64,000 nucleotides of DNA, taken from assembly GCA_964247055.1 (NCBI GenBank), contig OZ176059.1, forward strand, positions 1,178,001-1,242,000. Direction: 5' to 3'. The notes below the pieces were generated by a model, which was not told the origin of the DNA, did no database searches, and worked only from the letters and a program-made list of their open reading frames with translations. Shown here in pieces: positions 8,720 to 63,614 of this stretch. The first letter of the stretch is position 1. Each line of letters begins with the position of its first letter. The position numbers and the translations under genes were made by a program. This DNA comes from Paragordius varius. Its lineage: Eukaryota > Animalia > Nematomorpha.

Positions 8720-11700
8720 ATCAAATAATTCTTTAATAAATTTATATAAATGTCTTTTGTCTCTTTTAGAATCATACGGTTTTGCGCCGCTTATATTGGA
8801 GCACCCACGTGACACATGGGCCAATCCGAATGACACTATAACGTTAGTATGTAAGGCGGATGGGAACCCATCACCAACCTTTACCTGGTTCAAAAATAAT
8901 GAACCTGTAATTATTATTTTATAGTTTTTAACATTATTCATATTAGTAAAAATACCCCCCATTTTTGGGGTAACTGGATCATAGTTTAAAATGTAAAAAT
9001 GGATGGATTATATCCTTGAAAATGGAAAAAAATTAAGTTTAAAATATTGCAAACTTCTGAAAATCGGTTGTATCAAAAGCAAACAATTTTTTTAATGTTG
9101 TTGATGCCAATCGGTACTCTATACGGATATAGAGCAATTATTAATTGCACATCAAAAACTGTTAATTTCCTTGAGAACTAATATGAACACTCATAGTCAC
9201 AAATTATTTTCAATTTTATTTTTTCCCTAATTAATGGTAAGAATTTCAGCATAAATTATTTTTCTTACCCGGGAAAACTATATTTGGTAATACCTTTAAA
9301 TTGGATGTTTTATATCAGGGGTGTTCAACATGCTGCCCTTCATAATATCTCTCAGCCCCGTAAAACTATACAAAATTTTACAAAATCTAAACAAGAATGA
9401 TTTCCTTAAATAAATTTTCTTTACAAGATTCGAATTTTGGCATGGAAAAAGCAAAAATTGTTAAAATTAAGAGTAGTTTTAACAGTCTTATTATGATTGA
9501 AATCTAATATAAAATTTGATATTTCCCGATATCCATCCATTCATTTTAGGTCCCAGGGTATCTGGGGTTTCCATGCACCAACTTCCTGAACAATGTCCTA
9601 TCAAAGACTTGTTCGTGTTCAATATTGAAGTGTGATAGATCTTGGGTCAGCTGTTTGGACCATGTGAGCTTAGGGCGGCCTTTTCTGTTTGGGCCGGGTA
9701 TATTTAAATGTTGTATTTTTTGGACCCAGTTATCGGAATTCATACGTTGAATATGTCCGTAATATCGCAATCGATTGCGCTGGATGAATAGAGCTATGGG
9801 TTCATCTTCTTCTATGGTATTATCAAAATTATTGTTGCAGATTTTGAGCATGTGATTTTCAGCTCTAGTAAGTCTATTTAGGTCTGTTGCTGTAAGGGCC
9901 CAGGTTTCTGTAGCGTATGTCATAGCTGGTCTTATTCCCATTTTGTAAATCTTTATCTTGTGATTTGATTTGATATTTTTATTAGTTAAAATATATTTTA
10001 ATTGATTGAATTTGGCCCATCCTTGTCTGATTCTATGAGAAATGGCATCCCTCAAAGAACCATCAGATGCTATATAATCGCCCAGATATGGAAACGATGT
10101 TACCACTTCTAGTTTATCTCCATTAAAGTTTAAAGTACGGGAATTCGGTATTGGCAGTGGTATTGATGAAGCACATGGTGTGCAGATGAAATTATTATTA
10201 TTAATTAACTTTCCTTTTATGTTGGAACATTTTTTATGGACCCAATTTCTGCATTTTGTACAACAAAGTGAGTTTAGTTTTACCTCAGTGGTGCACACTG
10301 GGCATGGGAACTTTATAGTTTTATGTTCATCTCCTGTGATTAGAATTTTAGTTTTGTTTGTATTGATTTTAAGACCGTATTTATGTAATTGTTTTGACCA
10401 TATAAGATATTTATTTTCGAGTATTGAAATATCTTCTGCAGTGATTATGAGGTCGTCTGCATAAAGAATTTCATAAGGCAGACCTTCTCTCATATCTTTT
10501 GTTATGTAATCAATTATAGTTATAAAAAGAAGTGGGCTAAGGACAGATCCCTGATGCAGCCCAGTATTTATACTAAAATACTCTGAATTCCCAACAGGAG
10601 TAAGAACACAACTGATTGAGTTAGTGTAGATTAACATAATTAACTTAATGGTATATTCATCTACGTTGTTGTAGCGCAGTGATTCTATTATTAGTGCTCT
10701 AGGTACTGAGTCGTAAGCCTTTTCTAAATCGACAAAAAGGTGGAATAGTTTACGACCTTTTGCTCGGTATTTATCTTGTAATTGTCTGAGTAGGAAAATT
10801 GGATCGATTGTGCTTTTGCCCGCTGAAAAGGCGAATTGCATTGGATTAATTGATATGAGCTGGACGATACGATTTTTGAGGCACATTTCAAAAATTTTTA
10901 ACCCATGTTCAAGAAGTTTTAAGGGCCTGTATGAGGAACAGGTTAGGATATCTCCTTTATTTTTGAAAATGGGAAATATAATGCTTTTTTCCCAGTCTTT
11001 GGGTATTTTCATTTCAACTATTATTTTGTTAAATAAATTTGTTAGAAGCATGGTTATATTGGGTATTAATTTAATGATATCAAAACATTGTTCACTAGGG
11101 CCCGAAGCCTTGTTTGATTTCATTTGGTCTAAAGCAATCTCAATTTCTTGTATTGTGAATGTATTTAATGGGCCACAACAGGGATCTCGGTCAGAATTTA
11201 TTATGGGTGTTAAAGGGTTGTTTAGATTTTGCTCCATATATTTTTGCCATATGGATTTAATTAATTCTGGTTGTATTTGTAAATTATTATTATTATCTTT
11301 TATACATTTAATCGTTGGTATATCTTTTTTGTTATTATTGTAAAGTTTCATATGTTTAAAAATTTTATTATTTTGGATTTCCTTTTCCAATTTATCGGCA
11401 GTATCTTTAGCCTTTTCATTCATTAATTTATTTATTTCCTTTTGAACCTTTTTGTTGTATTTATAATACTCAGATTTGTCGTTTTCTGTTTTCGATTTCT
11501 TCCATTTTTTATACAAACGCGCCTTTTCTTTAAGTAATGGCTTAATTGCATCGTCCCACCACCATTTCTTTTGGGCTTTGCTCTTTCTTCTACCACACCA
11601 TTTTTCTACATTTTCAATCGTATTGCTTCTTAGACTTTGCCAGGAGTCTTCAACGTCAAGATTATCAATGTTTAAGTTAAGCGACTTTTTGAAATTATTC

Positions 11701-14700
11701 ATTATATCAGGTTTTTTAAACTTGTGTATATTAAGTTTAGGTTTGGTTCTATGATTGAAAGGTCTTGAGTTAAATTTGAAAATTGATGTTAAAACTTTAT
11801 GCTGTGTTTCAGAGTTATAAGTGGTTGTATTTCCCGATATATTTTACGAATGCGGCCCGTGAATCACTCTTAGGTTAATTATTACCTTTATTATCTAATC
11901 ATTTTTAATAAATAATATAATTATTTTAGTATCATCATTACCATGGTAACAACGTACCATTTAGTCAAGGGGACAAAGAAAAATTATCATCAGCCTGGTT
12001 ACGCTTCGATCAGTTGTTGTCCGAAAATGAGGGGGCGTATCATTGCGAAGCATCAAATATACATGGCCGAGCCAAGAGTACGTCGGCTCTTTTGCGGTTA
12101 CGCGATACCTCATCAAAGAAGGCTTCAAAAGATATCCATGGTTCTTTTTTGTTTAATATAATATACATTCCAAAAACATTTTTTTAAATATAGTATTTGG
12201 CCATTATCAAATACATTAAATGGTTGAAAAAAAATGTTTGATTGCAAATTATTTGTTGTTGTTTTACTATATGTCAAGTTCTTGGAATTTAGAATACATC
12301 TATGTATAATCTAGTCTGTTTGCAATAGATGCAAAAAGTTAATGTTAAGTACAGGGAATAGTTAGATTAAGACAAGTAGAATAATTTCATATTCTATTGT
12401 GGGCTATAAAAATAATAAAATTTTATAAATATATATGGTAAAATAGTAATTCGGATTTAAACGAAAAATAATTTAATAGCTTTGATGTTTGGCATTAAAA
12501 TTTTATTATTTTTTGAATAAAACTTGGCAAAGCTTTTAATTTAAATCTTTTTTTATATTTGCATTCTTTTAATTCCAATAGAAATGGAGGGAAATAAATT
12601 TTATTTAAATTGAATACTTATTAAATAATAAATTTTTCATTTAAATAAATATATTTTATTAATTTATGGAATACCTATTTTATTTTCCAAACATAATAGA
12701 TGATAAAGGTCAATATCTATCCAACAAAATTAGTAATGCTAAATTTGTTTCAAGTGCAAATGTAATCGCTAAATACAACCAAAAATATAGTGATGATAAA
12801 TTTACGCCACCCACAGTTATAACTGTTAACGAGAGAGAAACGATTGAATTAGCATGCCCATTAATGGCCATTATGAATGGCACGACTAATACTAATTATA
12901 ACTATGCCACTACTAAAGGAGCTAAAAGCGGTTTAATTCTTCAATGGTGGCATAAAAAATTGGTAGGGGAAAAACAATCAAACACATATCAATCCTCTGA
13001 GACTACGGAAACTCAGGAAAGCGTTACAGGTAAAAAGAATATTATTTTGCAAAAACCATTTTTTTAACTTATTCACTCATACAAATTCCATACAAAAACA
13101 CTAGATATGAATGATTGGCTCATTATAACACCCCGACACGATTTTTACAACAAAAATGGTATGTTAGATCAACCAGATTACAACAAATTACCATATCCAT
13201 TTGACGCGCCCGATAAAATTAATGAACTTAATAATCATGTTATTACATTGACTTCGAATGGAAAATTAAAATTTGTATCGGTTAAAGCAAATAATGCCGG
13301 TATGTATAAATGCGTCATCATATCCAATAAAGCCACTATAGAATTGGAACTAGGTAAAGGGAGACATGGGCATATTCACGCCCAACCTGATTCAATATTG
13401 TTCCAGGGAGCTGCTTCTGCTACTACTAAGCTAAATAATGATGATTTAGCTAATGTGCCATTGCCATTAGTTTCTAGTCTAACTAATCTTATTGTATTTA
13501 GTAAGTATTTATTCTTCTATTTCAATGCCAATTTAGTGTGTGTTTAAAATATTTTTATGTTTTAAATTCGTATATTACATAAATGATTGTCTATACAATC
13601 TTATTATATTATATTTGGTAGGTTTTTTTAGTAGTTGACAATATATAAATTTTTTGCTTTCGATCATCATATTCAAAAGCAATTGTCTCTATTAATTTTG
13701 AATGTCAAATAACGATAACTAGTTTTTCGTTTTTTTACATAACATAAGGTTTTTTAAACTCTATATTATATTTATATTTCTGCACTAGCTAAACCCCAAA
13801 TCATTCATCCGCCAGCTGATGTGACGGTACTCGAAGGTGAGGACGCTGAATTCGAATGTGAAGTAACCGGTGTCCCTGACCCTACCGTCGTTTGGAGTCG
13901 GAAATCTGGGGCGTCCGGATATCAACTCTCTATTCCGTATGAACGGGCAGCTATAACGGAGGGACGTAAATCCCTACGTATTAGCCGAGTGCAATCAGCT
14001 GATGCCGGAACATATGTTTGTGAGGTTCGTAACCGGGCAGGGGTGGTCAAAGCCCCGGCCCATCTAGCCGTTCATGTTCGGCCCACGTTTGTCGTTCCGC
14101 CCAGGGATGTGAGTGTCTTGCCCGGAGCCACGGCCACTTTTGATTGTGTTACGACAGGTATGGTAAATAATTGATCAAATAAAATCGCTTATTTAAATTG
14201 TTAAAATTGTGTAAATTTAGAATCTCACCGTATAAAATTTTAAAATTGTAATATTAGTTAATAGTTTAATTCAGGGGCACTTTTTCGCTAATTATTTTTC
14301 GTTACGGTTGTAAGGAATAAAACTGTGTTGCCTTGATTACAGAAGGTTTTTATATAAGGACTAATATCACGTTTAAATTATAAACATATCAAAAATTGCT
14401 TATTGGATTAGTTTAAGATAAATCATTCTCTTAAGTTAACAAACATTTACAAAGTTTTTTCATATCATATCACCATTAGTTAGAATATTGGAAAATATAA
14501 ATATTATTATGGTTTTCTATATAAGATAAAAATTTGTACGGATGATATAACATAAACGTTAATTATAATCAGCAATAACATGTTGTTTTAAAACCTACAT
14601 TTATAATTTTATATACATAAATTATTAGGTAATCCTACACCCAGCGTATACTGGACCCGTGAAAGTAGTCAAGTCCTTTGGTTCCCAGGGCGACCACATG

Positions 14701-26500: not shown

Positions 26501-29500
26501 TGACATTATTGTATGGCTAAAAACGTTAAAAAGGGAAAATATTTGATTTTTTTTTTGAAAAAAAAGACAACCATATTTTTATAACTTAATTATTTTAAAT
26601 ATATAGTGAAAATTGAAATTATAACAAGGATAAAGCGTAAAAATATAAAGACGAGTATTTGTTTTCTAAACAACCGTTTTACAAATATTGATTTTTATAA
26701 ATATGCATCATTGTTAATAGTTACAAAGTATGAAATAGAGATGAGTATATGTACAATTAAATATATATTTTACAATTGTAATTTAATAATATATGTGGGA
26801 AAAACTAAGGTTTTAAAATAGTATGGTTGTTTTTTGACAAATATTTGTCTTATATTTTTAGCTTTGTCTGTATAATCTCAATTTTTACTGCATTGAGTTT
26901 TGGTTTGCAAAATGATTGGAAATGTATATTGATAACATAGATTTCATGAAAATACCCTAAAATTATAAGCAAATGCAAATTAGAGATTTAAAAAGTTATA
27001 TAATACATATTATATGTGCGGTACATTTTATTGTTTAATTATTAAAAAAACAATTTTTATCATTCATAATATAATACAAACCCTATAAACGCACCTTAAA
27101 CTGTTTTTAAAATTATACTAAATTGGTAGTTTTTTTTTCAACTAAACCCAAAAATAACGCTAAGTATATAGTGCCGAAATACAAAAAATAAAATTAGATA
27201 TAAAAATAACAATATTATTAGGTTAGAAATGACAAAATGCCTTCGGTTTGTCAATAAAACCAGTATAAAAAAACTTTACTACAAATATATAAATCAAAGA
27301 AAATATTATTTCATACCTATATTTTCTATCTTAGTCTTATTATCATTAAGCGGTGGTGTGGGTAGGTAACTTATTTCAGGTACAGTTTCTAACGGACATT
27401 CTTTATTACTATTAAGTTTCTTTCCTATAGTTTCCACATTTTTATGCATGTTAACATAACTTGGAATACTTCGATTGGAATTAACTAGGGTTTGAGGTAT
27501 GATGCTAACATTATCAGTAAAATGATTATTCTGCTGATTAATTAAAGTATATTTCTGTTGACGTTTTGTCCTATGTAATTCAGGCTCGATATATTCTTCA
27601 TTACTTATAATTGGTGTATCTTTTTCTGTTGTTATATGCTTATTGGGTAATTCAAGTTTTTCAGTGCTACCATTCCTATTTTGATTGCCATTTTTATCCG
27701 GCATATTTTCAATTTGGAGTGAAAAAAATTCGGCGTCGTCGTCGCCATCATCATTATCTATATTGTTCTGGTTGGTTTTATGATATATGGCATTACCATT
27801 TTTCCCATCTATCATCAATAAAATGGGAAATAAGTAAAAAGACATATATATATATGTATATTATATACCATTTACAGTTCAAATTCACCCTTGAACAAAA
27901 CGATTCAAATTCACCCTCGAACAATTCAAATTCACCCTTGAACAATTCAAATTTAACCTAAAAATAAATTATGTGTTTTCGTACTAATATACCATTTACA
28001 GTTCCTAATTCACCCTCAAACAATTCAAATTCACCCTTGAACAGTTCAAGATCACCCTTGAACAAAACGATTCAAATTCACCCTTGAACGATTCAAATTC
28101 ACCCTAAAAATAAATTATGTGTTTTCACAAACTAATATAACTCCTTATTAATGATATAAAATATATCTTTATGGCATAATTTATTATTTTTTCAGTATTA
28201 TTTTAAGTTAAAACAAAATTTTATTTTTTAAAAATATATTTTAAAATATAGGTAATTTTTAAGCTATACATGTTATTTATTTGAGCCTGAACTTGAATTG
28301 TCAAAGGGTGAATTTGAATTATCGTTTACGGGTAAATTTGAACTGTAAATGGTATAGTATATTTCTTATTTAATACACAACTTAATATTCTCTTTTGCAA
28401 AACAAATCCTTTTTCCATTCACATAGAAAACATATATGCCGTTTAAATATACAGTATAGCTTTCTGAATTGGATATCATTTAAATTTATAAACAAATGAT
28501 TAAAAAAATTTTTCGTATATTACAAGATATCTTTGTCAAATGTAAAAATACAACAAAAAACTATACAGATACGGTTCAAAAATTAAAAACTTAAAACCAA
28601 TATAAAATTTTAATTGCTGGAGACAGCTAAAAACCTTTTAATGTGCGGTAATGAGGTCAAAAAATACCTAGTAAAATAGCCATGTAGTTTTGATTATAAT
28701 ATTTTCATTTTAGTCCCTAGTTATATATATAATATTTATTCTTTTGATATGGGTATAAATTAAATTTATTTTGCCAAACTAACCAATTTTTAATGATGAT
28801 ATATATAGGTGGTTATTTATATAACAGCAACTAACCTTATGGCATTTATGTTAAAGACACCGTATCTCACAGGAGGAATCAAGGATGATCCAAATTTAAC
28901 CAAATACAATAATATTAACTTTAAAATAAAGTATAGACTTAACCCACAAAATAAAGATGTACATAATGGCCATCAAATCCTTAAAAAATTTGCAAGATTT
29001 TAAATACACAAAAAATTGGATAAAGAAAGACATTATACGGAAACTTGAATCTTTTAGTTTTTTACTTAATAAACATATACACTGAACAATACTTATAAAA
29101 CCATTTTAAACCGGAAAAATTTATTACATGAAACATATATTCCGGCATAACCATCTAAAATAAGATTACAAAAACCAATAAATCTCGTCTTTTTTTAATG
29201 TATACCTTCACATTCGTAATCCCTTTCATCCATTAGCGTTTCAAGTTGGGCCAAATCATTCTTAGATATGGGTGCTATGCTAATATCCCTTACGGCACGA
29301 AATTGTCCACAATTATTGAGGTGTTCATTTTCAAGGCGAAAAAAATTCCATACAAACCTACGAAATACCTCAAGGGGAGCCAAAATGGATATAAGTATAT
29401 CGGCTTCTAATAATTCTTCCTTACCCACACTAACTGTCAGGGTCCAGGCAAAACGTAATACCAAATCTTGGACCTGAGAGGGTAAATACGTTAAAAACTA

Positions 29501-32500
29501 TGGAATTCAATGTTGATATTAGTTCAAATAAAAGAATGGATGAAAAGTTAAAAAATGTTTTTTGGGGTGTGTTAAAACAAAAGGGCATGCATGACATAAA
29601 GAGTAAAAGACGTTTTGTATTGACAAATTAACAAATTACCATAGCCAGGTAATAGTATGAAGGACGCCCATATACCATTTGTTCCCTCAATAAAGGATAT
29701 TCGTTTGATGATGCTGATGAATTGCTAGTTCTTAAAGATTTTATAACGCCGCCACCACCTCCGGTTTTATTAGTAGAGGCAGAATTTATAATGGTAGTAT
29801 TAGAGGGATTAGTAATACCTGTATTATCCAACAGTCCCCAATCACGTTTAATGTCCCAAGCATAAGCATACAGGCTGCTAAATATGGCAGCTCCTATCCA
29901 CATATACAGCGTTATATCGTGTCCTCGTGTAGCTTCTATAATATATATATATATATATATATCGAACAGGATTTTTACATGAATAATAATTATATATATA
30001 TATCATTTACAGTTCAAATTAACCCGAACAGTTCAAAACCCTCGAACAATCGAACTAATATAACTCATTGTTAATATTAAATATATCTTTATGGCATAAT
30101 TTATTATTTTTTCAGCATTATTTTAAGTTAAATCAAAATTTATATTTTTGGAAAATATACTGAAACATAGGGAATATTTAATCTTAAAAAACATGTTATT
30201 TAATTGAGGGTGAATATATACCATTTGCAGTTCAAATTCACCCTTGAACAATTAAAATTTGCCCTTGAACAATTCAAATTCACCTTAAAAATAATTTGTG
30301 TTTTTTAACTAATATAACCCATTTATGAAACATATCTATATGGCATAGTTTATTATTTTTTCAGCATTATTTTAATTTATGTAACACAAAATTTTCATTT
30401 TTTGAAATATATAAAAATATAGGGAATTTTTAATCTTAAAAAACATGTTATTTAATTGAGGATGAATATATACCATTTACAGTTCAAATTCACCCTTAGT
30501 CAAATTTACCCTCGAACAATTCGAATTCACCCTCGAACATTCGAATTTACCCTCGAACAATTCAAATTTGCCCTTGAACAATTCAAATTCACCTTAAAAA
30601 TAATTTGTGTTTTTTAACTAATATAATTCGTTGTTAATATTAAATATATGTATATGGCATAGTTTATTATTTTTTCAGCATAATTTTTATGTAACACAAA
30701 ATTTTTATTTTTTGAAATATATAAAAATATTGGTAATTTTTAATCTAAAAAATCATATATTTTATTTGAGAGTGAATTTAATTGTTTAAGGGTAAATTTG
30801 AATTTTTAGGTAAAAAAAGGTCCAAACTTTTGAAATATAGAGTCGCAAATTGCAAACGGCAAATGTTATCAATTACTTTTGCTCTATGATAGATTTTTAT
30901 ATAAAGTTAAAGGGAGAGCATCCTATCATATAATTGGATTTAAAACGATTAAAAATTAATAACGGTTTTTGACTGCTTATAATGAATGCCAAGTTGCATT
31001 TAACTTTCGTAAAAAGAAAAATAAAAACACAAAAATGAGATAGATAAATTATATGTATGTTAAAAACCAATAAAAAGACTCTTCATTTACCGACAGAAAA
31101 AAAATTAAAATAATATATTTTACAAATTAGTACGTATGTAAGGTGAAAAAATAAACAAGAACACAAAAATGCGAAATATTTATTAAATAATATTTTAATA
31201 TTTTTTAATTTATAACATAGCCTATAAAGGTATGTAAAGTATATGCGTTTAATGTTTATACATTGCTATTTTTTTAAACAAATTGAATATTGGTGACAAA
31301 TAGCATATATACAATACAGTAAAAAGTTTTATTATTAGTGAATAACAAGAAACAAAAAGTGAAAATAACTTAAGGCCAATATCATTTCTCCTTATATTAC
31401 AATAATAATAATCAAAAAATATTAATGTATATTACTTAAAAAAACTAAAATTTTTAAAGAACTAAACAAACTACTTGTTTGAAATGTATGTAAGGTTGAA
31501 AACAAAACGACAAAAAATGTGGTCGAATACTTCCCAGCATTGAGGAGATGTGGGAAGGCTTGTTTAGAGTCCCGATAACGGCGAAGACATTGGAAAAAAC
31601 GAAACCAAGCCGGTAACATAGCTATAACGGGTCGGACCCCGTATGAATTTGTAAAGCAAACCCCCTTCCCTTAAATAAAGATAGAAAAAAATAAAAAATA
31701 CAATAAAAAAAATATTTGACAAAAATTAATTTTCTTATGTGTATTATAATATGTTTAATACTCGTAAAATATATTATTTAAATTAAAACTATAACTCCAA
31801 TATTTTTGATAAAAGGTGGTAAAAATCAATGGATGAATAATAGAATAATTAGTATTGATAAAATAAAATATGTTTTATAATGATATAGTTATTATTACCG
31901 TAAAATAAATATTATATCAAGGACGAAGAAATATGGACAAGAATAAGTTGTATCAATATCAATAATATATAAACCTTTTAAACAAGTATTTATTTCCTTT
32001 CTTAATTAAAATGATTTAGTTAAATTTTTGATTTGAATAAATAGAACATAAATCTAAATTTTAAAAGTATATTTTAATGACAATAAAATATTTAAAATAA
32101 ATTGTACAAAAAAAGGTTTTTTTCATACTTCGATCGGGTAACCATTCAACTTCAAGGGCATAAAAACAAAACAAATATTCAAAATCTAAGAGGACTGTAA
32201 CTAGGCTATTAAGTTGATCGGCAAGCCAAAAATCTGCAAATCCCACATGGTAAAATGGTGCATTACAGATTCGCCACTACAAATATTAAAGTAACGGGAG
32301 GCGTGAAATATTAAGATAATATATATATATATATATATATATGCTCGCATAACTTATTTAAATATATAAAATGCCAAATTTTTCGGAAAAAGCCAATGTT
32401 TTAATTGATTAAAATATAGGATATATATATAATGAATAATACTTAGTAATAGGTTTTAAATGAGTAATACAATACTTAATAGTAATTCTTAATCGCTATT

Positions 32501-35500
32501 TAAGCATAAATTATGTACTCAAATTCCCTTATAATTTCTTTTAACAAATTTTATATTTTTGTTTGTTCACAGTGAGTTAAAATAATAATTTTATATAATA
32601 ATAGTTTATATTTATAAGTAAAAAACAGTAAACTTATATTAATCCCATCGTAAGAATAAAAAACAGCAAAAAACAGTTAACTTAAAGGCGTATTTTACAT
32701 CATGTGTTAAGAATGATAATTAAATATCAACAATTGTGATAAATCCGTGAAATAATAATAAATTAGAAAAAAAAACTAACCAAAATTCTAAGTAACCAAA
32801 ATCGACTCCGGTAGTAAAGGGTAGGCGTTGGATTTAGGAGAAATAGGACAAATAACGCAACTAATATAAGGGGACTAAGTAAGGCCGGGATTCTAAGTGT
32901 TTCACTAAAGAGGTAAACTAATACGGCACAGGCCCACATAACACCTAGGATACTTGCAATCTATAACATTTTTATTGGAAAAAAATCTATAAATTAATAA
33001 GCGCAAAAAACAGCGATACAATTAAAGGCATGAATGTATGTCTATATTTGAAATAGAGTCATAATTATGGGACTTTGGCTATTTATTTATTTTGCGCAAA
33101 AAGTGGAAATCATTGTATAAAGATTTTCCGATAATTTTTTGCCAAATAATGTTTTGTTCAAATACCATTGTTTTTTTGGTTGATTTTACGAGTAACCCGA
33201 ATTCGATACAATGTTAGTGTATGACCTAATTTTTACATTCTTAGAGGAAAAAAATATGGCAAAAGTTATTAAATTGGTAAAAAATGAACACAAATTTAAG
33301 TACCGCAATCGCAGTTAATTAATTTTTTTGGTTTAAAAACTGTTTATAAAGAAATTAGAAAAAAAACTATCCAAATTATTATAGAATAGTCATCTATTTT
33401 ATAATCACCTCTAAAATTTGTTGGTCCGTTAAATGATTCCTTGGGTCAATCTCAAAAATGAGGACGTGATTGACACCAGCTGATTGCCAACCATATGTGT
33501 TGATGCCTAGGAGATAGGTAAATAGGACGACTAGAAATGCGCCACGAAAGATGCGAACAGCTGGTCTCCAATCATCCCGATGATTCGTGAAAATGGCTAC
33601 AAACAATGATGTGTGACATATTATTAATATGTTAAAAATTATTAATAAATTTTAAGTTATATATATGGTAGGTAATATTTTAATTATTTTTCATATATTG
33701 TTCTATAGATTTTGCCAATATTATTGTATAACTTGGACCACATAGTTTGTTTAATAGAAAACAAAAAAACTTAAAAGTAATTATATTGTATGATATTGAA
33801 ATATATAATCTAATTTAAATATAAATGAACTTATAATAAAAATTTAATTATTTATCATATATCGTAAATTGTATTAAAAAACATATAAAAACTAAATTAA
33901 TTTTTTGTGGTCTTTTGTTCCATATTATTATTATTATCATTAATATTTTAAACTGAAAATCGGTAAAAATATATATTTGAAAAGCTAAGCATTGTAAATT
34001 AATAAGGAAAAATGTGAAATTTAAATATATATAGAATAGTTAACTTTGTTTATCATATAAAAAAATAATATTTACAATTTTATATTATATAAAAAATTCT
34101 ATAATAGCGCATTTAATAATTTTACTTACCAGCAAGTATTATAACAATGACTAGAATTATAAAAAATCCCAGGAAAAGACCGAGTCGAAATGAAGTCCAT
34201 AGAGATTTCTAACATGTAGCGCGGACAATATTATATAAAATAATAAAATCATAATCAGAAATATAAAATAATATTTATTGAGTTAGCTAACTATACAATA
34301 AAAATTAATAATTAAAAAATATATAAATTAATCGTTTTAGGTTGTAACACGTCTATAATAAATGGTATTTATATAGTTTATGTAGAAATTATTAAAGTTT
34401 TAAAAAGTATGGTTGTCTTTTTAAATAATATTATTTGTTTTTACGTTTGGTCCGTAAAATTTCAATTATTACTGTAAAATTTGTGTGCAATATTAGTTAC
34501 AAGGTAATTAATTGTTTAGTAAAAAAAATTGCAAGCAAATAAATTTTTACCTGTTCACTCAAGGGTGGGACTCGTAACCTTTTCATGGCTTTAGTCCTAT
34601 CTCCGGCCACCAATTTATTCGTATATAATGACTATATTTTATTTTATATAGTGTGTAAAATTATGTTAAAAATAATGAAATTAGGTTTTTTATACTACCA
34701 ATATATTATAAGTAAAAACGGGGTATTTACGAAAATAATTTAGATTTTTATGCAAAATCTCATAATCGGTAATACATGTTTTTGGAAAAGGTAAATTAAT
34801 TCAAATTTTACCTGCCTAAAATCCAATAATAATACATAATTTTATTGTCTATCAGAAAAATTTTGTGATGTTAAAATTGCCGTTTTCACTATTTTTTAAA
34901 GGGAAGGGGAAAATATTTTTTATGCAGATATTCGCAGTGATCCTTTTTATTTTTATGTTGATCAATAAGTAACATATTTTTGATAAATTTTTTTATATAA
35001 CGGTTTCAATATAAAATGAATATGATTAAATAACCTCAACTTCTTGTATAAAACGATTGATATCTTGATTGGTGTAAAAGGGGGCATTATCTACATTTTG
35101 AATGCGCCAATTAGTACCAGTTTCGGTTGAAAATAACTGTCAATATAACACAATGAGCAAAATATATATAATCGCAAATTTAAAAACTCTATTTATTTCA
35201 CAATACATATGATGAATAAAAAAATTAAAAATATTAGTCACTGAAAATTTGATGGAAAAAAGTGCATGTGAAAAAATGTATTTAAATTAAAATTATTGGA
35301 AATTAATGATTGATAAAATAAATTTTAACATACAATTATTAAACTAAATATACCATAATTATAAATAAAATTAGTGGTCAGAGCAGGGTTTAATACAGGA
35401 ACCGCAGATACCATCCTAATTTTGTATTGCTTTCTTAAAACACAAAATTTGATAAATTTGGAAAACTAACCCTCCTACCCAATGATACAATATCTATTTT

Positions 35501-37914
35501 TTTCGATATGCATGGACAAACAAAAATACCTTATCATGTTTCTTTAGGATTTTTCGGAAACCCGTGTAATTGAGTTGCTGATAATTTTGCAGTAAAACCA
35601 AGCTTAAATAGTATTCGGAGAAAGCGAGTTTCAAATCTTCCGCCTTTTTCCGGCTGCGTTTAGCTAGGCCAGGTGTTAGCGTAGGGAGTGTATATGCTGT
35701 CCCTAAGCTATTTGCATTTGCATTAGTAGCTAGAGTTGAATGTGCTTTGGCATATGCATTGATACCGTTGCGGTTATTAACTGCGTTATGACTGTCCTTT
35801 TTATCAGACGGTCGTCGCCAAAATGATGTCCACATACCTTGGGGTCGGGAATTTCGTTTTCCTACTATGCCCCCATCATTTTCATTGTTGCTATCAGTCA
35901 TGCTATTTATATCACTATTATTAATTATTATGTTTGGCGTTGTTTGATCCGTAAATAGGATCTTAGTAGTTTTATCCTCATTATTATTGGTATTATTGGT
36001 ATTGGCGGAATTATGTTGATTATTGAGCAATTGTGTGTTATCCTATTTAACATACAATTGTGTAAAATCATTTTTAAATGGATAAATTTGATATACATTT
36101 TACTGGTTTACAACGCCAATATTTTAGCTGTGATACCAGAAAAAAAGATTTCTTAGTGTTATACTCAACATTAAAAAAACCGTTCTTGATTAAGTATTAA
36201 TGTGATGTAAAGATTTTATACTTAAAAGTTGGCTTAATTGTCAGCTTTCCGCATTAACAAATCTGGTTATTGAGATGGGTAAATAAATTTTGCCTAAAAA
36301 TTTTTTTTGTAATTTAACGTAATAAAAATTATTTACGTCTTATATTTTTGCATGATACCCAATCTTAATATGCATATAGTTAAGTCAATCATGCATTTTC
36401 CACAATCAATCGAAACTTTACTCAGCGCCTAAAAACATTTTGCCAGTTGTTTAAGACATTTTCCTACCCGGTTAATGAATAACGCATTTCCGGTCTTTAA
36501 AACATATGTCCATTCAATATAAACATGTTTAACGCTGAAAAAAGTTATATCAATTATATATTTGCTTACATCATCCTTTTTATCAGGGGAGAAATTTGTG
36601 TTCGCTGCCGAATTCATCAAGATTTCTAAATCATCGGTTAGACTGCTATCCACGCCAAAAACTCCATTAATTTTGCTCGCTTTTTTATTCGTATCCTTAA
36701 GATTAGCGGGTGTCCGAAAACGCGCTTTACCCGTGCCGACATTTCGGGCCCCGACCAACCCCAATTTAGAGGTCCCATCTGCTGAGCGTAATTTGGACAT
36801 TATCATTTTGTTTGTGGCTGTTGATTGGAGGTTAGCCATTGCATCCGTGTATATGGCTAATTCAAATTTTAAACTAGCTAATTTACGGATGGCTTCAGCA
36901 AGTTTTTCTAGATTAAGTGACAAAACAATTAATGGGTGGGTGGGTGAGTTATAAGTTTTTTCCACTAATATTTACTGACTCGTTATATATAAATACCTTG
37001 TTGTAGCAAACTCATTTTCACATTTTTTATTATACTTTAATATTCTCGAAAAAGGGTTATTACACTAATAATATCGAAAATTAGCTAAAAAAATTTATCA
37101 TTTGATTTTGTACCATTTTAATTAACTGTTGAAAATTTTTTATGGATTTTGATTTTTTCTATATGATTGATTGAAAGCAAGAAATATATATTGGAAGTCA
37201 AAAACCTAAAAGTAAAAAATGTTTGTGTTAAGGTTGTTTAAAGACCGTCAGTGAAATCAATATCAAAGTATTCAACTCAAAACATTTACAAAAACCTTGA
37301 ATAGCAATTAAAACATACAATAAATCATTCTATTTGTTAGTTTTGTTAACAATTACTCTAGTTTTGTTATTTATAAAAAAAACTTTTACTTAAATAAAAA
37401 GGCTAATTGAAAAAGGTACCATTAATTTATCATGAGAACTGAAAAAAAAAGATGATTTAATTTGAAATAGGTATCATGATAATTCATTAAAAAATTAAAT
37501 GTAAGGGAGCCCTAGCCAACAGGCATCTATCTAACTATTATAGATTAAAAGCATCTTTTTACAAAAAACACTTATATAAATTAATTTTAAAAGTTACAAA
37601 ATGGAATATGTAAAATGATGATGGTTAGAGATAGGAACATACCTGCAAAAAAAGTGTTGATTTTGGTTAACTCAGCTTCACAAACGTTAAAAAATTCTTC
37701 ATCAAAATTAATTATAAATCTTTCTTGCTCAGCCTGACTATATCCTATGAAATTAGATATGATATATAACCTTCCTCAATAAACTCCTTTTCTTTCGCAT
37801 AAAGCATGTGTTTCAAATCCTAAAATTATATTTATAATGATATACCTCATAACGTATGTATTGTTTTCTCCATTCTGGGGTCAAATGCGCTTGCAAATGC
37901 TCAGTAAATTTCAT
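23596..37914 (-). CDS. XPR1: XPR1/SYG1 SPX-EXS phosphate exporter, 17 coding exons, about 1365 aa
   Basis: Exons in transcript order: 37914-37846, 37819-37771, 37744-37643, 36907-36570, 36042-35530, 35136-35035, 34631-34551, 34208-34130, 33596-33409, 32960-32781, 32276-32129, 31669-31475, 29935-29640, 29473-29206, 27808-27317, 26487-26187, 24292-23596. Total 4098 nt = 1366 codons. Motifs: [136 protein letters not shown]. The last three exons are supported by phase match only. Confidence 0.96.
24762..26009. mobile_element. Foldback-like element with about 350-bp inverted arms containing about 21-bp tandem repeats (XPR1 intron 16)
   Basis: Termini TATACCATTTTTCATGCAAAAACATCATTTTTTCAACCAAATGCAAC and its reverse complement. 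Tandem units resemble CAACATTTTTTCAAGCAAAGA. The inverted similarity continues to about 25110 and about 25640. Confidence 0.8.
27864..28356. mobile_element. MITE family A copy 1 (TATACCATTTACAGTTCAAATT TIRs, about 20-bp subterminal repeats)
   Basis: TIRs at 27864 and 28335-28356. Internal CAATTCAAATTCACCCTTGAA-type repeats. A second left end occurs at 27988. Confidence 0.8.
29999..30806. mobile_element. MITE family A copy 2, tandemly amplified (three left-end units, partial right end)
   Basis: Left-end motifs at about 29999, 30217 and 30469 (spacing about 220-250 bp), next to a (TA)n run. Confidence 0.75.
37745..37770 (-). other. 26-nt GT-AG intron (XPR1 intron 2)
   Basis: Minus strand GTTATATATCATATCTAATTTCATAG, phase 1. 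It joins EFIEE(G) to [18 protein letters not shown], and the following exon is 102 nt. Confidence 0.85.
37820..37845 (-). other. 26-nt GT-AG intron (XPR1 intron 1)
   Basis: Minus strand GTATATCATTATAAATATAATTTTAG, between ...YIRYE and DLKHMLY. Retaining it gives a stop (..F R I *). Confidence 0.85.
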
Positions 37915-38095
37915 CTAAATAGATACCAAAGAGTGGCTAAACGTAAAATTTGTTTAAAATTTGCATTCGTCTGCGCTCGACTCTCAAAAATTTGAAAAGG
38001 ACAAAACGAATATCGTATGACTAACGCATGACTTTATTTTCTATCACATTTTTTTTATAAATTATTGATTTGATATTTCTTTGCATATTTAGATA

Positions 38096-45940: not shown

Positions 45941-48900
45941 ATGGACAAATTGGTTATAAAAGGTATTCCCACTAACTCCTTAACTTCTCCCCAAAATTCA
46001 AGCGGTGCTGGAATGAACGATACATTTGGCTCTGTTCAATCGGCTACTAATGGCTCATTTGACATGGATATATATTCGTAATATATATATATAAATATAT
46101 CCATATTTTTATTTGAATGGCACTTTAAATCTAATCGCGTCCTTTTATATCGCCTTTTCAAAAAAATATTATCATTCTTTCTAGGTGTCATTTATTGGGT
46201 ATATCTTTTGTTGCCTATTTTTTTCTTAAAATACTTTATAAAATTAAGTTGTTATAAGCCTAATTTTTCGATTTGAGGGTGGGTTTATTAATTTTCCTTA
46301 ATGAAAATCCTTTATATATATATATATATATATATATATGCTAATATGTTTAGTTCTAAAACGTCGGACGATTTATTTGGGGCTGGTCGATACCAATTAG
46401 AGCGTGAAAAGCGTTTAAGGCGTGAAATTGCAAACAGTAATGAACGGAGACGGATGCAAAGCATTAATGCTGGCTTTAACAATCTCCGTAACCTAATACC
46501 CACAAGGCACAAAGAAAAAATGTCAAAGGTTTGATATATTTACTTATGCCATTAGTAAACTGCCATATTTTTGGGTAATCTTATAATTTGTTATAAACTG
46601 TATATTTTCAGTAAAATATTTAATTTTTTTCTCCATTAACCAATTAATAGTCCCACTAATAATATACAGTAGGATTATAAATGATTAACAAAAAAATGAA
46701 ATAAATGAATATCTAAATAAAATGATTAGCACATGTTTAATAAATATATCAAATGTGTAAGTAGATACAATAAAAAGGATTCCTCATGGGTCGTATATGG
46801 TGTATTTATTACATTTTTTTTTATCACGTGCTAATCATTTTTTCATTTGGATATTCATTTGTTTTTTCGTGATAATTATTTAATAATCTTACCGTAAATT
46901 TTTGCTGCATTTTTTTAAATTATTTGTAATTCTATTTTTCCATATTTATATTAAAAACTGTATTAACCATACAAAATTCAAAAAAATGTAACAATTTGCG
47001 TTCTAATATCTTATATAGTTTATTTTTATAGAATATAACGTAAATCCATTCCTTTTATTATATTATGATTTTAGGCTTCAATCCTTCAACAAACAGCTGA
47101 TTACATCCGATTCCTTGAGGAGGAAAAAAGTATCTTGATTAAGCGTAACAATCAACTGGAGAGTTTTATCAAGAGTTTGAATCAAACAACTAATACAGCA
47201 GCTGGGACCACAACGCTTAGTGTTAATCAGGTGGCCGCTACTCAGCTGTTGAGCGGTGTTAGCGGTAACGCTAATAATGCTAACAATAATAACACAGCTA
47301 ATAATAACGGAGTTGGAACCAGTAATTTAGCGGCCGGAAACCAGCAGCAACAGTTAACTATACAACAAGGACAAGGAAGTGTAGGTTCCACTGGAGCTGC
47401 TACTATACAATTTTTACGGTATAAACTAGGGGAAAGTTTTATTCTTTGCTTTTTGTTACTATATCTATGGGGAGGGAGGGTGTAAGGGTCAGTTTTGTTT
47501 GTGGTTGGTGTAGAATAATTTAGAATGGACATTTTACTGTCTTGAACAGCGGTATCAACACAAATGGTCGAACCGCAGTTTTGGATCATTGACAGGCCGC
47601 ATTTGCAAAATACATGGCTATTAACAAATGTTTTATTAACATAAGACTGTATATAGCAATTTTTGCTATAGTTTATTGCCAAATTTTGGAAAGACTTTTT
47701 CAGAAACTTTATATGATATAATTAATTATCCTTAGGCTTTGTAAATTTTTTAATTAAAATTTCTAACGGGAGCAAAGATATTTCGGAGTGTCGCATGTTG
47801 GACATCCCTGGTTTAGAGATATTGTTTTTTTGGTCTTTTATTTTCCAATTCTTCCAATTAATTCAACAGTTAACCACTCTTGCCATACAAAAATATTATA
47901 TAATGTTTATAAATCAAAGAGTTATATACATATTTAAAATTTATTCGCTTTATCTTGCATTAGATCAAATTCAACACCTCAACAGATAATAATTAAATCG
48001 GCACACGGGGCACCCCTTACCGGCCAACAAATCATGAAAATAATTCCAGCTCAAAGAGGTTTTTTAAAAAATTATTATAAAAAGTACCCTCATTTATTAT
48101 GAAACATGGTTTGCAAAGTTAACACGTTTGTGCTCGTCTAAAACTTAAAATTAAGTTTTTAATTTCAGAGCTAAATATACTTAAAAGGTTCTGATTTTAA
48201 GCTTATGTTCAAATATATTTTATTAACATATAACAGCGAATAATTTGACACCTGGGATAAAGAACGCTGCTGTAATACGCACGGGCGCTACCATAGGCAC
48301 CGTGAATAATGCCGCTATAACCCCTACCTCATTATTAACATCTACAACTAACGGTATATAATTTTTCTTTTTTTTGGTATATATTTTTGTTGGATTATTG
48401 CGAAAATTTTATAACTTGTATAAATTGCTATATACTATGTATATTCATATTGTTTTAAAACCATTTATAATTAATTAATGGTATTTTTTTGTTTAGCATA
48501 AACTAAAACATAATTCCCTATGAAAATATGTTTGTAAAAACAAAACATAAAAAGTCATCACTATGAAAAATATAAACCACAAATATTTTGATATATATAT
48601 ATATATATAAATATATATATACCATTTACAGTTCAAATTCACCCTCGAACAATTCAAATTCACCCTAAAAATAAATGTGTTTTCGAATTAATATAACTCA
48701 ATACTAATACGAAATATATGTTTCTGGTATAGGTTATTATATTTTCAGTATTATTAAAAAGCATATATTTTATTTGAGGCTAAATTTGAATTGTTCGAGG
48801 GTGAATTTGAATTGTAAATCGTATATATATATATATATTATATATAATATATGCAGGTGGAACAAACGTTGTTGATGATGGCACTACGCAGGGCTCCAAT

Positions 48901-59298: not shown

Positions 59299-62200
59299 GA
59301 TAGATTAGAATACATCAAGTTAGTTAACCTTAGACAAGACCAATTTATATATTAGATTTGAATACATTTTGATGACCTTTTATATATGATTTAACGATTG
59401 TATCAATTTTGTATTTAATCTGCACAAGTTATTTTACCTTGGCTTAACATGTAAATATTGTATTCACAAAAAGTATATATACATCGCAAACTGTATGTAG
59501 TTTAGTTTTTGCATTTTATCTCAATAAATCTTATTGTTTTACGGTTTCTTGATTTACTACATTTGGCGCGGTCGAATTTTTTTTTTACCTCATTACATTC
59601 GCGCATGGAGAAATTAAGTTTAGAACCCTATGATCCAGCAATGAGTTTCGAGGATTACATAGATTATATAAAGAGAATGTTAAAAGTGAAATTAATTCCA
59701 GAAGATGATGAAACAAAAAAAAAACATACTATTGGCCTACATTGGTCTATCCCATATTCCAAAGTTGAAGAAATTCTTTTATCCTGTACTGTTAGAGGAA
59801 GTGGGCTGGGATGCTTTGGTAGCAGCTGGAAAAAAAATATTTGCTCCGACATACAATGCGTTTGCAGCCAGGTTCCAGTTTACGCAACTCCGAAGGGAAG
59901 CCACGGAATCAGTGATGGATTTTTTGATTCGAGTAAAGGAATGTGCTGCCCGGTGCAACTTTGGGCAAGATGCAATGCTAAGAATCAGAGATGGGTTTGT
60001 TGGAGGGTTACAACTCAAAAGATTGGAAATAGATCTGTTCACAAAATTTCCAGATGCAATGGTTGATGGGAAACCGGTTACGTTGGAGATGGTGGTAGAA
60101 ATGGCGATGGCATACGAAAAGGCGGACAGCTGTTTGATTGATCAGGGTCCCGACAATAGGCAAGTTATGATGATAAGAAAAAAATGTGGAAAATGTGGAT
60201 ACGTGCATGCGATCAACTGGTGTCCCGCTTCAAACAAGGAGTGTTATCGATGCAAAGGACGTGGTCATTTTGGCAGGTGTTGCCGGCGCGTTAATAGACT
60301 TCATGGTAACAATAATAATAATGAAGCCCGAACGCAAGCAAGTCTGAATGGCCATTGGGTGAGGATGTTGTACGATACCGGAGCTCAAATATCATTGATT
60401 GGGAAGAGCCCGTGGATGGAGATTGGGAGGCCGACCTTAGCTCCCGCGGGTCCAATAGTTGGGTTCAACCAGCAAGGTGTAGAGGTGATGGGACAAGGTA
60501 TGGTAGATGTGAAATGGAATGGTATGGTCAAACAGTTGGAATGTATGGTTACGAGGGATGATTGGGGTAACATTTTTGGGCTACCATGGATGAAAAGTTT
60601 TGAATGCAGATTTCCAGAGCCTGTATGTGTAAAAAATGTTAATTACGTGGAATTGAATAAATTTAAGGATTTGTTTTGTGAGGGTATGGGGTGTTATACG
60701 GGACCACCCATTAAGTTGTTTCTCAAAAAAGGGAGTATCCCCAAAAGATTTGCGGCAAGAAGGGTACCTATTCCGCTTCAGTCTAAGGTGGAGAGTGAAT
60801 TAAAGAGGCTGGAAAGTCTGGGGATTATAGAGTCCATAAACCCCTCGCAAACACGAATTGACTGGGTAACTCCATTGGTGATAGTTAAAAAGAATGATAA
60901 CAATATTCGTATATGTGGTGATTTTAGAGTTACTTTAAACCCAAGTCTGGTTCCTGTAGATCATCTGATTCCAACGTTTGATCAGTTAGTGTTTAAAATC
61001 GGGCAAGGAAAAGTTTTTACGACCTTAGATCTAAAAGAAGCTTACTGGCAAATGCCGATACACCAAGATTATCAACATTTACTCACGTTTAGTTCACATA
61101 TAGGCCTTTTTCGATTTAAGAGACTGCCATTTGGAATATCTAGTGCACCCACGATATTTCAACAAATTATGGATGAGTTATTAAAAGATTGTCCAGGTAC
61201 AGCGGTTTACTTAGATGATGTAATTGTTAGTGGAACAACGGTAATGGAGCATAAGGATAATTTAGAAAAAGTGTTGAACAAATTAGCTGCTGTGGGTTTG
61301 AAATTAAAAAAGGATAAAATCCAATTAGCTCGTTCCTCAGTGTCATACTTAGGATATATAATTTCAGACAAAGGAATTAAACCAGATAACGAAAAAGTAA
61401 AAGCAATTTTGAATTGTCCTACACCTACCAATAAAACATTACTTCGGTCTTTTTTGGGAATGTTAAATTTTCACGCGCGTTTTATTCCATCTTTGCATGC
61501 TACAATCGCGGACTTACATGCGCTTACAGGTTCTAAGAAATGGTGTTGGTCGACAAAAGAAGAGAGGGTTTTTGATAAAGCTAAACTGTTGGTGAGTAAT
61601 GCCTTATGTCTAACACCGTTTAACCCGAACCTTCCGTTAGTGTTGGAAACAGATGCATCGAATGACGGATTCGGAGCAGTTTTATCACATATGACAAGTG
61701 AGGGAAAACGGCCGATAGCTTTTGCGTCTCGAAAATGTGCGAAGGCAGAACAACATTTCTCTGTAATTGAAAAAGAAGCAAGGGCAATTTTATATGCGCT
61801 AGAAAAATTTAAAATGTTTGTGTATGGCAGAAAGTTCGTATTATTAACCGATCATAAACCCCTGATCAAGTTGTTTGGTTTTAAGAGAGATCTAAGTAAT
61901 ATTAACAATAGTAGATTAGTAAGATGGATACTCAGAACAGCCGATTATAATTTTACTATACAATATATTAATGGTTCGGAAAATTTAGCGGATTGGTTAT
62001 CTCGTCTACCGTATGAAGAACCGACTGAGGAAGTGGAGGAGCAACCCAGGCAAATCAACTTTCTACAACTGACAACTTAAGCGTACAGCGAATGAAAGAA
62101 AATACTTTACGGGATGAGTTTTTGATGGCATTAAAATCGGCTCTACATCATAATGATTGGTCAGCTCCAATTCTAAATTCGGTATTGAGTATAAGAAACG

Positions 62201-63614
62201 AAATGCAAGAATCATATGGTTTGTTGTATTGGGGCGATCGTCTGTTTATACCCAGGGCGTTGCGAAATGAAACGTTAAAATTTTTGCATGTTGGACATTC
62301 GGGGGCTAATGTAATGAAAGAGTCTGCCAAGGCTAGGGTTTATTGGCCAGGTATAAACCAAGATATTGAAAATTATGTGAGATCTTGTATGGGGTGTCAG
62401 TTAAACCGGAGTAACATAAAAAGTAATCCAACGTACAAATGGAATTTTAATACGGGTATCTGGGAAAGGATACATCTTGATATTGCCGGTCCTATAGATG
62501 GGTTGTATTGGTTAGTAGCTATCGATAGTAGCTCCAGATGAGTTGAAGTCGAATTGCTAAGAACTGTTAATTCTGCAAACATACTACATTGGTTGGAAAT
62601 TTGGTGTGTAAGGTACGGGTTTCCCCGAATGATCGTTACCGATAATGCAACATATTTTGCATCGAAAGATTTTAATGAGACCTTGCAACGAGCAAACATC
62701 AAACACGTCACTAGCGCCCCCTATCATCCACGAACAAATGGGCTGGTGGAACGAGTCATTTACACCTTAAAAGCACACTATAAATCGTTAACGGATTCTA
62801 AGCTGACTCCTGACAAAAAAATAAACCAAGTATTATGGGGTTATCGCTCCGCCGTACATAGCGCCACAAAAGAGTGCCCGTATAATTTATTTCTGAAAAG
62901 ACCAATTAATACCCCCTTCTCTTGGGTTAGGGAAACACCCGCACAACAATTAGAGGACGACATAATTCCTAATCAAACTTTTAGACCGGACGAAGAAGTG
63001 TACATAAAGAATGAAATCAATTCAGGGTGGAGAAAAGGTATAATTTTGGAGAGAACAGGGGTACTCTCGTACACGGTTAAAGATGGAAATCGAACACTTC
63101 GCAAGCATGCGGATCAATTACGGCCGACCGGAGTCGAGAACGGCGTTGAGGAGGAGGATAATGTAACGATAAACCAAACAGATGAAGAGATGACAACCAA
63201 TAATCGGGAGGTGGGGGAGGAACCAAGCAAAAACGAGAAAGACACCCAGGTTGAAATAAGAACGGAAAAAACAACTGAGAAAGAACCTGAAAGGAGATAT
63301 CCTCTTAGGGAAAGAAAAGCACCAGATCGGCTCGGATTTGGATAAGGAGATATGATAGATTAGAATACATCAAGTTAGTTAACCTTAGACAAGACCAATT
63401 TATATATTAGATTTGAATACATTTTGATGACCTTTTATATATGAGTTAAACGATTGTATCAATTTTGTATTTAACCTTCACAAGTTATTTTACCTTGGCT
63501 TAACATGTAAATATTGTATTCACAAAAAGTATATATACATCGCAAACTGTATGTAGTTTAGTTTTTGCATTTTATCTCAATAAATCTTATTGTACGGTTT
63601 CTTGATTTACTACA
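59299..63614 (+). mobile_element. Gypsy/Ty3 (Mag-like, K02A2.6-type) LTR retrotransposon, full length, three coding lesions
   Basis: LTRs 59299-59561 and 63353-63614 are nearly identical (a few substitutions and small indels). The 3' LTR is TG...CA and the 5' LTR lacks the first T. Flanking ACCTG duplication at 59294-59298 and 63615-63619. PBS-like TGGCGCGGTCGAA at 59564; purine tract AAGGAGA before the 3' LTR. Domain order is gag Zn knuckle (CYRCKGRGHFGRCC), protease (YDTGA), RT (YLDD), RNase H (LETDAS), integrase (HHCC, DIAG..TDNA..NGLVER). Confidence 0.95.
59605..63345 (+). pseudogene. gag-pol of the Mag-like element, interrupted
   Basis: The ATG at 59605 is joined to ORF 59705-62080 only by a +1 shift in an A10 run (59715-59724). 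There is a frame change near 62078-62092 and an in-frame TGA at 62539-62541 where Trp is expected (SSR*VEV). Confidence 0.8.

Follow-up and report, generated by a model that had tools for sequence, protein, structure and literature searches.

The XPR1 (SLC53A1) gene in a 64,000-nucleotide (nt) stretch of DNA from the nematomorph Paragordius varius (contig OZ176059.1; hereafter the window) very probably carries two real, ancestral spliceosomal introns that have shrunk to an extreme degree, to 26 nt each. We favor this reading because the logic of the reading frame, the homology of the exons, and intron sites held in common with three other animals all lead to it. The two segments surround a 49-nt exon, as an earlier note on this DNA had described with coordinates that prove correct to the base. 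They occupy ancestral sites in a conserved, ordinary gene whose remaining introns reach 1.5 kilobases (kb). Coordinates given here are positions in the whole window, and XPR1 is read on the minus strand. Excision of the introns is read from genomic DNA, and the case is built on the anatomy of the segments, the frame logic, the homology of exons 1 through 3 and the common intron sites.

Removing two 26-nt segments restores the XPR1 reading frame

Each of the two 26-nt segments begins with GT and ends with AG, and excising both turns the 220 nt of exons 1 through 3 into a single open frame. Stop codons arise if intron 1 is kept, if intron 2 is kept, or if exon 2 is skipped. Specifically, retention of intron 1 leads to a stop after 10 codons.

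Homology to human XPR1 frames the missing interval. Exon 1 aligns to human residues 1-23 (E 5.5e-9) and exon 3, over its residues 7-32, to human residues 48-73 (E 4.7e-5), so that about 24 residues are needed between the two matches. Exon 2 and the first residues of exon 3 together provide 23, compared with the approximately 24 expected from human spacing.

The sequence encoded by exon 2 also resembles that of its counterparts. XPR1 residues 24-30 follow the pattern [ED][ML]K.MLY, and Lys26 is present in 98 of the 99 distinct XPR1 N-termini on which our family motif was built. Exon 2 starts D-L-K-H-M-L-Y, and its first eight residues score 16 bits against residues 24-31 of this motif, a score reached by none of 200,000 random 48-mers (53,054 of them open) drawn from the long introns of the same gene; the arrangement as a whole far exceeds chance. 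The exon-2 frame alone (24 amino acids), a query too short for such a search, gave no match in the Protein Data Bank.

Two of the residues supplied by exon 2 correspond to human XPR1 residues that contact InsP8. InsP8 site 1 of human XPR1 includes Tyr22, Lys26 and Tyr30 along with Arg157, Lys158, Lys161, Lys162 and Lys165 (PMC11926068). Here, Tyr22 is encoded by exon 1 and both Lys26 and Tyr30 by exon 2, and the partner RK..KK..K cluster is intact in exon 5. An mRNA lacking exon 2 would be predicted to yield an exporter whose sensor is damaged. The view expressed in the earlier note that exon 2 is needed is borne out by the stop that skipping creates and by the presence in this exon of Lys26, Tyr30 and the family motif.

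The two segments occupy intron sites found in other phyla

To place the two segments among XPR1 introns of other animals, the proteins of annotated XPR1 genes from three species were each mapped back onto their own DNA. Throughout the comparison, exon 1 ends after ..YE in phase 0, and site 2 lies in phase 1, just past the residues that align to the end of exon 2 of the present genome. The annelid Paralvinella palmiformis has introns at both sites (1,613 and 2,078 nt), and its first three exons are 69, 52 and 102 nt long, where those of the present genome are 69, 49 and 102 nt. Exon 3 of the annelid gene ends in phase 1 before EKLAEA, as it does here, and the exons that follow in the annelid are as long as exons 6 through 8 here (102, 81 and 79 nt). 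In the bee Osmia bicornis, exon 1 is again 69 nt and site 1 holds an intron of 107 nt, and there is no intron at site 2. The mite Tetranychus urticae shows the reverse arrangement, with no intron at site 1 and one of 243 nt at site 2. The site of intron 3 is also present in bee XPR1.

By these alignments, both 26-nt segments sit at intron sites that are older than the split of these phyla. Because the sites are common to other phyla, chance pairs of GT and AG can be set aside, and the segments are therefore best explained as ancestral introns that have shrunk 4- to 80-fold. The earlier note had matched the junctions to exon boundaries of human XPR1; that they are ancestral XPR1 boundaries is supported by the annelid exons of 69, 52 and 102 nt, by site 1 of the bee and by site 2 of the mite. 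Its description of the tiny introns as a size class apart likewise holds, with 26 nt for the pair versus 166-1,539 nt for the other 11 introns of the gene. The same note had pointed to motifs shared by introns 1 and 2. Such motifs are present, but the resemblance is not significant: when 22-mers are drawn at random from the long introns of this gene, 9.7% of the pairs have in common a word of the same length or longer.

A possible route to splicing, and its difficulties

If our reading is correct, introns 1 and 2 would be GT-AG introns of the U2 type, a classification suggested by their ends, that are ancestral and were reduced to 26 nt in this lineage. Both would be removed constitutively to yield an mRNA for a complete XPR1 phosphate exporter whose SPX sensor domain is intact. 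The spliceosome would presumably cut by using a branch-point A only 6-8 nt upstream of the G that closes the intron and 17-19 nt away from the donor. In intron 1, the candidate branch sequence is ATAAT, which fits the yUnAy consensus at four of five positions and places its A at 37826 (final G 6 nt downstream, donor 19 nt upstream). In intron 2, it is CTAAT at 37756-37752, a full fit to yUnAy, with its A at 37753 (final G 8 nt downstream, donor 17 nt upstream). Neither intron has a real polypyrimidine tract.

Several observations weigh against this proposal. The splicing of both introns is a prediction from genomic DNA. The donors (GTATAT and GTTATA) are weak, matching the U1 consensus at the first two or three positions only. 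The assignment of branch sites is a guess, given that such words are common at 12-19% G+C, and the 17-19 nt between donor and branch fall far short of what ordinary animal spliceosomes are known to accept. Searches with XPR1 exons gave no XPR1 gene of a close relative in which the 26-nt segments could be seen to evolve as introns: word searches with the exon-4 frame and with the last exon returned, respectively, no match and no match above 70% identity, and an exhaustive search with exon 5 returned generic XPR1 fragments only. Lastly, an in-frame alternative acceptor (CAG/GCT) is present inside exon 3 at 37734/37733 on the minus strand, where the earlier note had placed it.

This acceptor could be used with the intron-1 donor at 37845. 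The product would be a single ordinary intron of 112 nt, with exon 2 unexpressed and with an SPX N-terminus that is 20 residues shorter. Such a join is in frame, and 112 nt is a size that any animal spliceosome can manage. However, this intron would remove Lys26 and Tyr30 of the InsP8 site, and it would shorten a spacing that is otherwise equal to that of human XPR1 within one residue. Nor would it account for the presence of the family motif in a 49-nt piece whose own frame is closed by stops at both ends, and the matching 52-nt exon is expressed in the annelid. We regard use of the 112-nt intron as very improbable.

An equally small chance attaches to the idea that the tiny introns are real but deliberately poorly spliced, such that retention truncates XPR1 and acts as a phosphate-responsive switch. 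Keeping either intron does bring an early stop, and poor splicing of tiny introns in microsporidia has been reported in work cited by Hadjez et al. (PMC13644364). The switch had been raised in the earlier note, and it is unsupported and pure speculation. Similarly, the suggestion made there of a reduced or altered spliceosome finds no support, and nothing in these data points to one.

Less probable still is that the region represents an artefact or a dead gene, in which an assembly error or the broken frame of a pseudogene is bounded by coincidental GT and AG ends. In its favor, the region is very AT-rich. Nevertheless, all 14 XPR1 exons are open and conserved and their sum is in frame, and both breaks are exact GT..AG units at the intron sites of other phyla. 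Moreover, two public sequencing runs (X1 and X2), which may come from the source sample, contain 100% of the sampled words of positions 35400-38000, and we therefore take the DNA to be as assembled. The share of these words is 35% in a run from organism B, a close relative (X3), and 22% in another run (X4), and five further runs (X5-X9) contain next to none; none of the listed runs is recorded as RNA.

Finally, non-spliceosomal excision resembling that of the IRE1-cut XBP1 intron or of tRNA-type bulge-helix-bulge introns has the coincidence of a 26-nt length in its favor and is very unlikely because the 141 nt around the introns lack RNA structure that could guide such cutting (they fold worse than shuffled sequences, with z = +2.0 and 197 of 200 shuffles at least as stable, and form no G+C-rich twin hairpins), and the GT..AG ends lie at ancestral spliceosomal intron sites.

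Structure of the XPR1 gene

The two introns belong to an intact XPR1 gene, for which we placed 14 exons between 37914 and 29198 on the minus strand by using tblastn with two XPR1 proteins and by reading each boundary individually (Table 1). The summed length of these exons, 2,616 nt, is divisible by three. At the 3′ end, the frame either meets a stop at 29197-29195, directly after position 29198, or continues through one further donor. The Pfam domains SPX and EXS are matched across the exons, the SPX match on exon 3 being weak, and a search with the last exon retrieves structures of human XPR1 (SLC53A1) with an E value of 1e-32.

The tiny introns account for 2 of the 13 introns and occupy the first two positions only. 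From intron 3 through intron 13, the lengths are 735, 527, 393, 403, 342, 533, 448, 504, 459, 1,539 and 166 nt. G+C content is 39% in the exons and 22% in the long introns.

Other features of the gene are peculiar to this genome or concern its noncoding parts. Exons 5 and 13 (35530-36042 and 29640-29935) include long insertions rich in Asn, Thr, Ser and Gly that are absent from other XPR1 proteins, and these extend the protein to about 872 residues versus about 660-700 elsewhere. Intron 4 (36043-36569) divides a region that the annelid (residues 75-167) and the bee (residues 75-156) each encode in one exon, and it adjoins a lineage-specific Asn-rich insertion; this intron may be a lineage-specific gain. 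Tandem 21-nt repeats are present at 30234-30284 and 30500-30593, within intron 12, the longest of the gene. On the other side of the coding region, a 28-nt GT..AG unit at 37915-37942 on the minus strand abuts the XPR1 start codon (..CTATTTAG, followed directly by ATG). This unit, on which there is no coding constraint, could be a tiny intron of the 5′ untranslated region or a trans-splice acceptor.

Some sequences were considered for the XPR1 comparison and rejected. Contigs that might have held the XPR1 genes of relatives (P0001, P0007 and P0046) proved to be unrelated pieces of metagenomes or RNA, and another candidate (P0100) is an intronless gene copy. Separately, in assembly GCA_032884065.1, a 657-residue XPR1 without introns (locus L005, 6001-7974) falls within the span of a large NFACT gene of the opposite strand, and is probably a retrocopy in that unrelated genome.

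Table 1. Positions of the XPR1 exons, its two 26-nt introns and two retrotransposons in the window.
Feature	Positions	Strand	Description
XPR1 exon 1	37846-37914	-	69 nt; ATG at 37914; codons 1-23; phase 0 end after ..YIRYE
XPR1 intron 1	37820-37845	-	26 nt; GT..AG; 12% G+C
XPR1 exon 2	37771-37819	-	49 nt; residues 24-39 plus 1 nt
XPR1 intron 2	37745-37770	-	26 nt; GT..AG; 19% G+C
XPR1 exon 3	37643-37744	-	102 nt; phase 1 end after ..TFFA, then GT donor
XPR1 exons 4-6	36907-36570, 36042-35530, 35136-35035	-	placed by tblastn and boundary reading
XPR1 exons 7-9	34631-34551, 34208-34130, 33596-33409	-	placed by tblastn and boundary reading
XPR1 exons 10-12	32960-32781, 32276-32129, 31669-31475	-	placed by tblastn and boundary reading
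XPR1 exons 13-14	29935-29640, 29473-29198	-	placed by tblastn and boundary reading
Non-LTR retrotransposon	9549-11843	-	765-codon frame; RVT_1, E 4e-30; weak PHD finger
LTR-retrotransposon pol	59696-63342	+	RVT_1, RNase H and integrase core in two adjoining open frames

Other genes and repeats in the window

Two other genes in the window bear on intron length. A gene for an immunoglobulin (Ig)-domain receptor, Robo-like by eye, occupies 8.6-21.3 kb on the plus strand, and its introns are at least 75 nt wherever they can be placed. Indeed, the shortest intron placed in the window outside the XPR1 pair is the 75-nt GT..AG intron at 13030-13104 (+) of this gene, in agreement with the lower limit given in the earlier note; this intron is placed by frame reading only, with an I-set match (E 1e-24) nearby. 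A basic helix-loop-helix (bHLH) gene at 46346-47076 (+), AP-4-like by eye, has its ATG at 46346 and an HLH match with E 4e-9. Because its first coding intron is 547 nt long (46529-47075), tiny first introns are not universal. When the window was scanned for more GT..AG units of 18-40 nt, the hits were mostly noise within long open frames. Rfam at gathering thresholds detected no family in the window, which thus contains no small nuclear RNA genes.

The retrotransposon without long terminal repeats (non-LTR) sits in an intron of about 3 kb within the Ig-domain receptor gene, whose strand is the opposite one. The long terminal repeat (LTR) retrotransposon pol has 38-39% G+C, compared with 22-30% in the surrounding DNA; across the window, composition ranges from 22 to 39% G+C. 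The composition and retrotransposons of the window fit the published figures for the genome of another species, Gordionus montsenyensis (26.93% G+C and 63.8% repeats), in a genome paper whose text nowhere uses the word 'intron'.

Implications of tiny introns beside long ones

Textbook accounts and a survey of 51 animal genomes (Hadjez et al., Mol Biol Evol 2026, PMC13644364) confine animal introns shorter than 30 nt to two highly reduced parasite lineages, in which almost every intron is tiny. Because the tiny introns of XPR1 are neighbors of long ones in an ordinary gene, extreme shortening here is not tied to compaction and seems to depend on position. The XPR1 pair would then exemplify a class of 20-35-nt introns that is found close to gene starts across the genome, beside ordinary long introns. 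That a repeat-rich, non-compact animal genome holds such a discrete promoter-proximal class, derived from shrunken ancestral introns, is a tentative proposal that we consider possible and somewhat doubtful.

If true, introns below 30 nt would have arisen independently in animals a third time, and for the first time in a position-dependent and not a genome-wide manner. A single spliceosome would join a donor and a branch point 17-19 nt apart in transcripts that also lose kilobase introns. How close donor and branch may lie when the same spliceosome must also process long introns thereby becomes a testable question. There would also be a practical consequence, in that genes of this kind would be cut short or missed by gene finders that do not permit very short introns, with effects on gene counts in this poorly studied group. 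If true, some of the published nematomorph gene loss could be an artefact of annotation, as common finders and aligners ignore introns of this kind; tiny introns could in this way be linked to the published BUSCO figures. Our literature search turned up no study of nematomorph intron lengths, and a class of tiny introns looks unpublished for this phylum.

Comparison with known tiny-intron systems

The unconventional 26-nt intron of the XBP1/HAC1 type requires twin stem-loops that are cut by IRE1. The XPR1 segments share with it the length of 26 nt and the shift of frame that accompanies removal, but no twin stem-loops are stable here, and the ends are GT and AG. Among unicellular organisms, ciliates and microsporidia likewise tolerate spliceosomal introns below 30 nt, according to work cited in PMC13644364; in contrast to the present case, tiny introns are the norm there, and that work describes the efficiency of microsporidian splicing as low.

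Closer in kind are the animal lineages surveyed by Hadjez et al. (PMC13644364), in which myxobolid Myxozoa and Dicyema japonicum have GT-AG introns shorter than 30 nt, with medians of 22-27 nt. Among the 51 genomes, whose discussion in the main text leaves Nematomorpha unmentioned, such introns occur in no other group, and we found animal introns of this size reported in the literature for these two lineages only. The likeness to XPR1 introns 1 and 2 extends to lengths below 30 nt, to conserved positions between conserved exons, to weak splice-site motifs, to a few A residues, candidates for the branch site, a short way upstream of the AG, and to little or no polypyrimidine tract. The systems differ in extent, because nearly all introns of Myxobolidae and Dicyema are tiny and their genomes are small and compact, whereas here 2 of 13 introns are tiny and the window contains retrotransposons. 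Judged as a genome-wide ultra-short regime, the window thus offers two introns below 30 nt, without a median below 30 nt or a compact genome.

Parasitic flatworms provide the counterpart in layout. In these animals, intron positions 1 and 2 are dominated by a short mode, which lies at about 32 bp in Gyrodactylus salaris, and the length distribution is bimodal in tapeworms (Hahn et al., 2014, PMC4040987). The length here is 26 nt rather than the short mode of about 32-37 nt seen in Neodermata, and the host is an ecdysozoan and not a flatworm. Regardless, short introns at positions 1 and 2 are exactly the layout of XPR1 in this genome, as seen in one gene beside a neighboring bHLH gene that has no tiny first intron.

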